Shown here piece by piece: positions 3,200 through 21,085 of a stretch of DNA of 64,000 nucleotides; positions within the stretch are counted from its first letter, which is position 1; the number at the start of each line of letters is the position of its first letter. Source of the stretch: Thecamonas trahens ATCC 50062 (Eukaryota; Protista; Apusomonadida). The position numbers and the translations under genes were made by a program. The notes beneath the pieces were generated by a model. It was not told the DNA's origin. It searched no databases and saw nothing but the letters and a program-made list of their open reading frames with translations. The stretch is from positions 462,133 through 526,132 of the forward strand of contig NW_013657664.1 of the NCBI RefSeq assembly GCF_000142905.1. The letters are read 5' to 3'.

Positions 3200-4120
3200 A
3201 TGTCTTCTGGTCGCAACGCATCCTGCACCCTCGTCGGCGACGGCGTCACTGGCTCCATCTCGTTCGCTCAGGAGAACGCTGGTACGTAGTCCACATAAGT
3301 ATTGCGTTGCATGCATGAACTTTCCATATTCAAGCTGTCTTGGGGTGTGGACAAGGAGGACGGGGAGGACGGGAGGAGGTGGTGGTGGTGGTGGGAGAGG
3401 GTGGCAAAGAACAAGTTTTTGGTCGCGTCGCGGCACGTGACGGACAGCGAGTTTGTCCACGCCCCCCTCCCCCAAAGCATCACACGGCTGGGAGTGGTAC
3501 AGTGGCGGCAAAGTGTGAGTGTTACTTTGTGTGTTCTCTATCATGTGGCTTGGTTGGTGGCATGGCGAGCAGTTCCATGTGTGTGGTAGGCTCGAGGATG
3601 ACGTGCGGCAGCCGTGTCGCGGGTGGCACCACGTCAGGTCGCGCTGGCAGGTGGTGTCGTCATTGTCGGGTTGGCGACAGCTCACAGGCTTGCGTGCGGC
3701 TGTAGACTCACATGCCGAGGTGGGCGAGACGCAGATGCACCCACTACTGTGACTGTGGAGATCACCGGGCTCACCCCGGGCAACCATGGCTTCCACATCC
3801 ACCAGTACGGCGACCTCACCGAGGGCTGCAAGTCGACGGCCGGCCACTTCAACCCGTTCGGCAAGACCCACGGCGCACCGTCTGACGACGAGCGTCATGT
3901 GGGCGACCTCGGCAACGTCACCGCCGGTGACGATGGCTCGGTCTCGACCTCGATCACCGACGCGCAGGTCACGCTCTTTGGCGAGCACTCGGTTGTTGGC
4001 CGCGCCATCGTCGTCCATGCTGGCGAGGATGACCTCGGCAAGGGCGGCCACGACGATTCGCTGACCACCGGTCATGCCGGCGGCCGCGTCGCCTGCGGTG
4101 TCATCGGCCTCACCGCCTGA
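3200..4120 (+). CDS. SOD1: Cu/Zn superoxide dismutase; exons 3200-3281 and 3735-4120
   Basis: Motifs [34 protein letters not shown] and [10 protein letters not shown]. Phase-1 intron GTACGT...GCAG (3282-3734). Confidence 0.96.
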
Positions 4121-19217: not shown

Positions 19218-19647
19218 CGGTCTTTCCGTCTCTGCGCCGTTACCGTCTGCTTGAGTTGAGTCTGTGTGCCACACGATCCGCTTGATCGGGTAAGGTTGGG
19301 CCCATTTGCGCGGAGAGGCGGATGATCGGGTCATGTTGGCTATGTCATGCCGATGGGGCCGAGGCCAGTGGGGTTTGTGGAGAGGGACGGGGCTGGGGGG
19401 GGGGGGGGGGGGGGGTGGGGTGGGGGGATGATGGCTGATGGCGGGCTTTTGGGCCTTTATTACTCTGTGTGCGGTGATGTGGTTTGATCGGTGCCTTTGT
19501 GATCGTGGTGCTTGTGTGCCTGTATATGTGTGTGTGGGGCGTTGGGCTTGCTACAGAGATCATCTTTGCACCATGCGTGAATTGGACTGCTATCAGTGTG
19601 GTGATGTGGGTTTGATCGGTGTGATGAGGGGCATTTCCCTGGGATCG

Positions 19648-19689
19648 TGGTGTGTGTGTGTGTGCTTGTGTGTGTGCTTGTGTGTGTGC

Positions 19690-19749
<60 letters not shown>

Positions 19750-19775
19750 ATGCATGTGTGTGTGCGTATGCATGT
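19648..19775. repeat. (TG)n microsatellite
   Basis: Long TG run in the NDOR1/CCS divergent intergenic region. Confidence 0.95.
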
Positions 19776-19838: not shown

Positions 19839-21085
19839 ATGAGCAGTCAGACCGAGCAACAGGAGGAGGTTGAGCATCTGACTCTGGTACTTGTTGCGTG
19901 GATTAGCGAGTGTTGGTCATGTCTGCAGACGAGGATGTTGCTGTTCGCGTATGTTGGGCCAGTGGGTGAGCACGGTGGGGGTAGTGGTGGTATGCAGAGC
20001 CCCATGTTGGTCGCTGGGTTTGGTGGAGGTGGTTGTCAAGTGGTCTCATCATGGTGGGCGTGGAAACGATGGATGTGGGCGGTGGGCGTACGATTGGACT
20101 GTGCGGTGGCGGGTGATGGTGGGCATACGATTGGACTGTGCCGTGGCGGGTGATGGTGGGCGTACGATTGGACTGTGCGGTGGCGGGTGATGGTGGGCGT
20201 ACGATTGGACTGTGCGGTGGCGGGTGATGGTGGGCATACGATTGGACTGTGCGGTGGCGGGTGATGGTGGGGTGGCGGGTGATGGTGGGCGTACGATTGG
20301 ACTGTGCGGTGGCGGACACGGCTACCGCTGCAATCGTACAGTACGAGTTTGCGGTCCAGATGACGTGTGGTGCATGTGTCCAAGCTGTGACAAAGGCGCT
20401 GGAGAAGGTGGACGGCATCCAGGAGTCCGAGATCGATCTTGAGGGCCAGGGTGTGACCGTTGTGGCCACTGCTCGCCTGCTCGACCTCCTTGCCGCGCTC
20501 GAGTCAACCGGTATGAAGACTGTGGTGCTGGGCATGGGCGGGACCAAGGGCAATCTCGGCGCCGCGGTCGCCATTCTCAAGTCAGACGACCCGAACGTTC
20601 ACGGCGTGGTCCGGTTTATTCAGCTCGCTGAGAAGGCATGCCTCATCGATGCCACCGTGGCTGGCCTCACCCCGGGCAAGCACGGCTTCCACATCCACGA
20701 GTTTGGCGACTGGTCCAACGGCTGCATCAACACCGGCGGGCACTACAACCCGGGCGGGAACGACCACGGCGGGCCCGATGATGACAACCGCCACGCAGGT
20801 GACCTCGGAAACATTGAAGCCGGCGCCGATGGCGTCGCCGTCTTCCGCACCGTTGACAGAGTCCTCAATGTGTGGGACATCATCGGCCGTGGTATCGTGG
20901 TCCACGCCGGCGAGGACGACCTCGGCCGCGGCGGCGTGCCCGAGTCCAAGACCACTGGCAACGCCGGCGGCCGCGTCGCGTGCGGCACCATCGCTCGCTC
21001 TGCCGGCGTATTCGAGAACACAAAGCGCATCTGCAAGTGCAACGGGACCACCATCTGGGAGGAGGATGACCTGCGCTTTGCCTGA
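19839..21085 (+). CDS. CCS: Copper chaperone for superoxide dismutase; exons 19839-19886 and 20342-21085
   Basis: Three-domain layout: HMA domain EFAVQMTCGAC, a SOD-like domain, and domain III ARSAGVFENTKRICKCNGTTIWEE with the CxC motif. Phase-0 GT-AG intron. Confidence 0.93.
20081..20314. repeat. 37-bp minisatellite in the CCS intron, about 6 copies
   Basis: Unit GGTGGGCGTACGATTGGACTGTGCGGTGGCGGGTGAT at 20081, 20118, 20155, 20192, 20229, then a truncated copy and 20284. Confidence 0.95.

Follow-up and report, generated by a model that had tools for sequence, protein, structure and literature searches.

A Superoxide Dismutase Copper Chaperone with a Complete SOD1-Type Metal Site in Thecamonas trahens and Several Other Eukaryotic Lineages

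RESULTS

A two-exon CCS gene and a SOD1 gene lie on the same strand

The window, by which we mean the whole 64,000-nucleotide stretch of the Thecamonas trahens ATCC 50062 genome that was analyzed, comes from an apusomonad, a member of the group that is sister to animals plus fungi. Positions 19919 to 21085 of its plus strand hold the two-exon gene AMSG_04097, whose product is a three-domain SOD copper chaperone (CCS) of 257 amino acids (Table 1). Exon 2 (20342-21082) translates into a sequence that matches the database entry AMSG_04097 of Thecamonas trahens ATCC 50062 (P0001) at 100% identity, and because of this identity, the reading frame is not a chance one. The gene is public, and UniRef already names it as a SOD copper chaperone. 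The original prediction had placed the CCS gene at 20342 to 21085; that interval holds up as exon 2 but falls short of the whole gene, whose first exon lies upstream. Searches based on the window used CCS exon 2 alone, and alignments and fold prediction used the full-length database protein.

Table 1. Features of the CCS gene and the SOD1 gene in the window
Feature	Position	Strand	Basis or remarks
CCS exon 1	19919..19948	+	ATG and 9 codons; MSADEDVAVR, the first 10 residues of P0001; GTATGT donor at 19949
CCS intron, 393 nt, GT...AG	19949..20341	+	Acceptor ...GTACAG/TAC; P0001 is exon 1 plus exon 2
CCS exon 2	20342..21085	+	247 codons without internal stop; TGA 21083-21085
Domain I, ATX1-like HMA, with MTCGAC at 20360-20377	20348..20512	+	Pfam PF00403, 5.6e-13, exon 2 residues 3-57
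Domain II, SOD1-like beta-barrel, complete Cu and Zn sites	20597..20992	+	Pfam PF00080, 3.1e-45, profile positions 1-133 of 133
Cu ligands, codon starts	H46 20690, H48 20696, H63 20741	+	Translated exon 2
H120, CAC	20903-20905	+	Residue 198 of the full-length protein; position of SOD1 H120 and human CCS D200
Zn ligands, codon starts	H71 20765, H80 20792, D83 20801	+	Translated exon 2; H63 shared with the Cu site
Disulfide cysteines, codon starts	C57 20723, C146 20981	+	Translated exon 2
D124 (second sphere) and R143 (catalytic), codon starts	D124 20915, R143 20972	+	Translated exon 2
Ala-Arg, CCS-type dimer-interface marker (human CCS Ala231-Arg232; Gly150 in SOD1)	20993..20998	+	Alignment
Domain III, C-terminal tail with CKC (CxC)	20999..21082	+	Cys codons 21032-21034 and 21038-21040; opposite human ICSCDGLTIWEE
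Conventional SOD1, two exons	Exon 2 3734..4120; exon 1 near 3203-3285	+	Sod_Cu 1.1e-46; all ligands; SOD-type Gly

The CCS intron carries a minisatellite (20081-20271; period of 37 bp, 5.2 copies, 96% matches by Tandem Repeats Finder). An intronless gene starting at one of two in-frame ATGs (20264 and 20282) was considered, but the model with the upstream exon was preferred: both ATGs arise within the minisatellite, and the preferred model gives a CCS N terminus of normal length. The stretch just upstream of the CCS start codon contains 33 consecutive G residues (19395-19427) and a (GT)n microsatellite with ~57 units (19650-19764).

AMSG_04097 is the single CCS orthologue of Thecamonas trahens: of the seven Sod_Cu matches in the genome, a single one belongs to a CCS. 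The others are the SOD1 gene in the window, 16 kb upstream of the CCS gene on the same strand; one domain in a 681-amino-acid protein on contig 48; and four repeats in one open reading frame (ORF) on contig 3. The exon 2 ORF of SOD1 ends in ...ACGVIGLTA, and a SOD-like N-terminal stretch is in frame in a separate upstream exon; our analyses of Thecamonas SOD1 used exon 2 only. This SOD1 is presumed to be the client of Thecamonas CCS.

The two remaining proteins have architectures of their own. The contig 3 ORF (789 amino acids; L007:682-3051, plus strand; about 641918-644287 of contig 3 in assembly G000) contains four tandem Sod_Cu domains (1.8e-115, four stretches) and has a C-terminal hydrophobic helix and then RKKK. 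The Cu and Zn ligand positions of its first repeat appear to be kept, and the protein, here in an apusomonad, is seemingly of the Cu,Zn type. The contig 48 ORF (681 amino acids; L001:532-2577, minus strand; also in G000) has a central, residue-complete Sod_Cu domain (2.5e-47) and, at its C terminus, a weak AhpC/TSA-like match (2e-4, below the Pfam cutoff); the ORF could encode a fusion of SOD with a thioredoxin-fold domain.

AMSG_04097 has the domains, the sequence markers, and the predicted fold of a CCS

The best solved relative of the exon 2 product was full-length human CCS (6fp6_B; 3e-84; query residues 2-242). Human CCS (PDB 6fp6, 6fon, and 1do5) has the same three-domain layout and is 54% identical to Thecamonas CCS over ~232 columns, and the two proteins share the MTCxxC motif, the Zn ligands, the disulfide, R143, the Ala231-Arg232 pair, and the CxC tail. 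The CKC tail of the Thecamonas protein also aligned with human ICSCDG...TIWEE. With the Thecamonas query, domain II of human CCS (1do5) scored 200 bits, compared to 162 bits for the best SOD1.

An AlphaFold model of P0001, built on 40 CCS sequences, had a pLDDT of 93.6 and a pTM of 0.89. Domain I is predicted to consist of strands at residues 9-15, 36-42, and 47-52 and helices at residues 20-31 and 56-64 (pLDDT of 96 to 98). The model fits the human CCS chains of 6fp6 to within 0.8 to 0.9 Å over ~232 columns (target TM of 0.97 to 0.98), and the modelled domain II fits solved SOD1 structures to within ~1.0 to 1.2 Å.

Domain II carries marks that separate CCS from SOD1. Loop VI is three residues shorter and holds a Trp (KV---WD) in all aligned CCS sequences, a feature found in none of the SOD1 sequences. 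An alanine at the dimer interface (Ala231 in human CCS) has been defined as a marker and described as nearly universal in CCS (PMC6383938). SOD1, including that of Thecamonas, has in common with Thecamonas CCS every catalytic and metal-binding residue as well as D124 and the motif of the electrostatic loop, but it lacks domains I and III, has Gly at the interface, and has a longer loop VI. AMSG_04097 thus has an MxCxxC HMA domain, a domain II that the tree groups with CCS, a CxC tail, the interface Ala-Arg, and the CCS fold, and its domain II does not belong to the SOD1 clade, having Ala in place of Gly150 and a shortened loop VI in addition to its position in the split. We are nearly certain that AMSG_04097 is a true CCS whose site is complete.

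Domain II retains all four Cu histidines

CCS is commonly stated to have no Cu site in domain II, but in the Thecamonas protein the four Cu histidines are all present. The SOD1-type ligand set is complete (H46, H48, H63, and H120 for Cu; H63, H71, H80, and D83 for Zn), and the C57-C146 disulfide pair, R143, D124, and the electrostatic loop are there as well. The electrostatic-loop segment ESKTTGNAGGR and D124 resemble those of SOD1 in the alignment, and over the 16 positions that we scored, the site pattern is CCHHCHHHDHRCARCC. Every Cu and Zn ligand, disulfide cysteine, and catalytic arginine listed in the original prediction was found in frame at its codon, and the chaperone motifs that it named, MTCGAC and CKC, were both in place (Table 1).

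The position that sets this protein apart from human CCS is H120. In the alignment with 6fp6_B, human LIIDEGEDD stands opposite Thecamonas IVVHAGEDD, so that human CCS has Asp200 where Thecamonas CCS has His. In human CCS, with Asp200, domain II does not bind Cu, and the protein is inactive as a SOD (PMC13017621), and the engineered human variant D200H is described as gaining SOD activity and activating itself (Schmidt et al. 1999, as cited in PMC13017621). Having four Cu histidines like Thecamonas CCS, and being reported to work both as a Cu chaperone and as a self-activating SOD, D200H is the functional model for it, with the difference that D200H is a laboratory mutant and AMSG_04097 a natural gene. 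Yeast Ccs1 and insect CCS belong to the same family, have the same role as SOD1 partners, and conserve the CxC tail. Domain II of yeast Ccs1, unlike that of Thecamonas CCS, is without SOD-like metal sites (PMC13017621); what had been said at the outset about human CCS (Asp200 and the activity of D200H) and about yeast CCS agrees with this source. The domain I cysteines are missing from fly and moth CCS, and position 120 is Thr or Lys in the insect CCS proteins sampled.

Domain II groups with CCS and apart from the neighboring SOD1

We built a maximum-likelihood tree from 62 SOD-like domains (39 CCS and 23 SOD). The split between SOD and CCS had a support of 100/99, with Thecamonas domain II on the CCS side and both Thecamonas SOD1 and the contig 48 SOD domain on the SOD side. 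This result bears on the possibility that the active site was re-imported by a recent fusion of, or by gene conversion from, the neighboring SOD1, an origin for which the proximity of the two genes (only 16 kb, same strand) and a string of 11 residues around H120 that is identical in CCS and SOD1 would speak. Because domain II falls with CCS and the organism's own SOD1 falls with the SODs, we rule out such a recent event, to which we give almost no credence. Domain II also has the loop VI deletion with Trp that is found only in CCS, as well as the Ala-Arg marker, and it is 60 to 61% identical to the CCS of alpaca (Vicugna) and Nematostella, compared to 56% identical to its own SOD1. At the codon level, sliding windows revealed no conversion tract: among identical residues near H120, third-position identity was 0.55 to 0.69, a range that is ordinary for this GC-rich genome, whereas a recent conversion would give values near 1.0.

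Inside CCS, the tree was weakly resolved, and 21 of the 59 inner branches were drawn open. The groups of CCS with a full site adjoin the SOD branch and have short branches, with Thecamonas plus P0262 placed first, P0017 plus P0021 next, and then the anemones. Mean identity to the 23 SODs was 51% for full-site CCS domains versus 44% for other CCS, and Thecamonas domain II was the most SOD-like of the 39 CCS domains (56% mean identity to the 23 SODs); because the CCS sequences were collected by their resemblance to a full-site query, both the frequencies and the Mann-Whitney result are biased. The basal grade formed by the full-site proteins conflicts with the species tree because it parts anemones from corals, and slow evolution alone may lie behind it.

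Full and broken sites are scattered across eukaryotes

The 16 positions were scored in all CCS-like matches from two word searches, one profile search, and a representative search. The profile search, made with nine full-site CCS proteins, added the full-site protein P0410 and a crinoid sequence (H120, A46, and G143). Among the matches listed, sponges, ctenophores, choanoflagellates, molluscs, and most protist groups were unsampled, and vertebrates dominate the matches of the profile search.

The full pattern CCHHCHHHDHRCARCC was present in Thecamonas; in the anemones Exaiptasia, Actinia, and Nematostella; and in the environmental proteins P0262 and P0410. The three complete anemone proteins are identical to Thecamonas CCS at 16 of 16 scored positions, including His120 and R143, and the CCS of a fourth anemone, Actinostola, which is partial at the N terminus, matches at every scored position that it covers. 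P0262, from the Tara Oceans marine metagenome, is 68% identical to Thecamonas CCS. The filasterean Pigoraptor chileana has a complete domain II site in a transcript that is cut at the C-terminal end. Two further environmental types have a complete domain II site: P0148, in which domain I did not align, and P0017/P0021, which lack the domain I cysteines, as does fly CCS. Counting the lineage of P0002 and P0262, the lineage of P0017 and P0021, P0148, and P0410, there are at least four full-site environmental lineages. The CCS proteins of the anemones (Nematostella vectensis, Exaiptasia diaphana, Actinia tenebrosa, and Actinostola sp.) and of Pigoraptor chileana are 51 to 53% identical to Thecamonas CCS, come from different phyla, form no single clade with it in the tree, and are annotated as CCS. 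The full site is therefore less exceptional than the original prediction suggested, since an intact site with H120 also stands in annotated public CCS proteins, including that of Nematostella vectensis.

Two of the environmental types have unusual N termini. P0017 and P0021 carry a Cys-rich N-terminal extension, and P0410 begins with 62 amino acids that resemble a presequence, which suggests, from its sequence, that P0410 is an organelle-targeted full-site CCS.

Elsewhere, the site is broken, and it is broken at different residues (Table 2). Position 120 carries Asp, Thr, Lys, Ser, Glu, or Tyr in various lineages, and in others H120 is kept while H46 and R143 are gone. All sampled CCS proteins with four Cu histidines keep R143 and both disulfide cysteines, except for two sequences that end earlier, and in the sampled CCS proteins the lineages that lost H46 are also without R143. 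The pairing of H46N/A with R143G recurs in distant animals, either as convergent inactivation or as an old CCS allele or paralogue.

Table 2. Active-site states of CCS proteins with an incomplete site
Lineage	State
Vertebrates, >130 clusters	D120; remaining Cu histidines and mostly R143 kept
Insects	T120; K120 in one butterfly
Mucoromycota fungi	T120
Coemansia	G120 and A46
An octocoral	S120
Jellyfish Rhopilema	N48, D120, and G143
Stony corals (P0275, P0298, and P0411), tunicate Clavelina (P0043), and crinoid Antedon (P0429)	N/A46 and G143, H120 kept
Arcella	Y120
Foraminiferan Nonionella	E120
Chlorokybus and Sesamum	Y120, most ligands gone

The distribution points to retention followed by repeated loss

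That different residues are broken in different lineages fits the retention of an ancestral site together with repeated independent loss. The suggestion made at the outset, that a complete site could be the ancestral state of CCS, has gained ground: the full site occurs in Apusomonadida, Filasterea, Actiniaria, and environmental lineages, its bearers adjoin the SOD branch, and other CCS proteins are disabled at different residues. Within the deuterostomes, H120 is present in a crinoid and a tunicate, and H46 and R143 are present in vertebrates; because of this, the simplest reading of the sequences is that the deuterostome ancestor had all three residues.

The opposite course would be secondary regain, in which an ancestor without H120 reverted (for example, from GAC to CAC) separately in Thecamonas, the anemones, and other lineages. 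The step itself is small, Asp to His being a single base change, and a single mutation is enough to restore the site where the other ligands persist, as they do in vertebrates; the many open branches inside the CCS part of the gene tree also leave room for it. Regain nevertheless requires that this reversion took place separately in at least six lineages, and neither the variety of the lost residues, which is the pattern expected from many independent losses, nor the deuterostome ancestor implied by the crinoid, tunicate, and vertebrate residues agrees with it. We regard regain as improbable. Judging from the comparison of sequences, the complete site is likely to be an ancestral SOD site that was retained, and CCS probably lost its Cu site at a late stage and on many occasions, not in a single event when it arose.

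DISCUSSION

Thecamonas CCS brings together on one polypeptide the parts for Cu capture (domains I and III), a CCS-type interface for docking SOD1, and a complete Cu,Zn site. In the mechanism that we propose, the cysteine motifs would take up Cu(I), and domain III would insert Cu into immature SOD1 docked in a heterodimer. Domain III would also insert Cu into the chaperone's own domain II, and the Cu,Zn-loaded chaperone would itself dismutate superoxide, by analogy with engineered human CCS D200H. By the same analogy, we think it rather probable that metal-loaded Thecamonas CCS has measurable SOD activity. Taken as a whole, the account that on balance explains the observations best is a CCS that retained the ancestral SOD site and works as a self-loading chaperone-dismutase.

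The chief alternative is that the protein is a chaperone only, with its Cu-site residues kept for mimicry of SOD1 in docking or folding, or for transient holding of Cu, and without SOD activity that matters in the cell. Across the vertebrate classes sampled, CCS has preserved three Cu histidines (H46, H48, and H63) and R143, although vertebrate CCS binds no Cu in domain II. Because of this, conservation of these residues is by itself no proof of catalysis; they can be held by something other than catalysis. The need for an extra dismutase is also not obvious in a genome that has SOD1, a SOD-domain fusion, and a four-repeat SOD, and the CCS-type interface Ala that Thecamonas CCS keeps points to selection for the SOD1 heterodimer (PMC6383938). 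Against a purely chaperone role, one substitution at the same residue is reported to make human CCS an active, self-loading SOD, and Thecamonas CCS has H120 together with the second-sphere Asp and the electrostatic loop. The pattern described above also argues against it, with R143 and the disulfide cysteines kept wherever the four Cu histidines are kept (the two sequences that end earlier excepted) and R143 gone where H46 was lost. We consider a chaperone-only role possible but unlikely, and we continue to favor a chaperone that is also a dismutase.

It has been argued that a Cu site in domain II works against one-way delivery of Cu (Peterson and Culotta 2026, PMC13017621), and the human CCS variant R163W pulls Cu back out of SOD1 (PMC13017621). 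The domain II site of a full-site CCS could compete with its client SOD1 for Cu.

The evolutionary scheme that we would put forward begins with the fusion of HMA and CxC parts to a SOD that was still active, after which most lineages would have lost the Cu site independently. In its full form, the scheme holds that the fusion produced a self-loading enzyme that charged its paralogue; that this enzyme survives in apusomonads, filastereans, anemones, and several uncultured eukaryotes; and that different mutations turned off the Cu site at least eight times, among them one set in vertebrates (H120D) and, independently, another in tunicates and echinoderms (H46N/A with R143G). We advance this complete history tentatively, as a scenario that has a little less than an even chance of being right in all its parts.

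A recent review holds that CCS lost its Cu site early and that there is "no Cu site in CCS dII" (Peterson and Culotta 2026, PMC13017621). Our full-text literature search found no description of a natural CCS that has the full set of four Cu histidines or that acts as a SOD, in a coverage that leaves most subscription journals outside, so that an earlier mention is possible. The CCS family, its fold, and the engineered bifunctional mutant were already known; what is new is the natural CCS with an intact site in several deep lineages, and the value of the finding lies in this pattern across lineages more than in Thecamonas alone.

The same review poses the question of why copper capture and dismutase activity reside on two molecules, given that D200H does both (PMC13017621). 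This question is directly touched by natural CCS proteins whose site is intact, and they suggest that fusion came first and that loss came later and repeatedly. Full-site CCS is available in a culturable protist, Thecamonas, and in a laboratory model, Nematostella. If they are active, the full-site CCS proteins would be the first natural self-metallating Cu,Zn-SODs, and they would serve as a natural control for the idea of a "one-way copper ticket," by which the disease variant R163W of human CCS has been explained.
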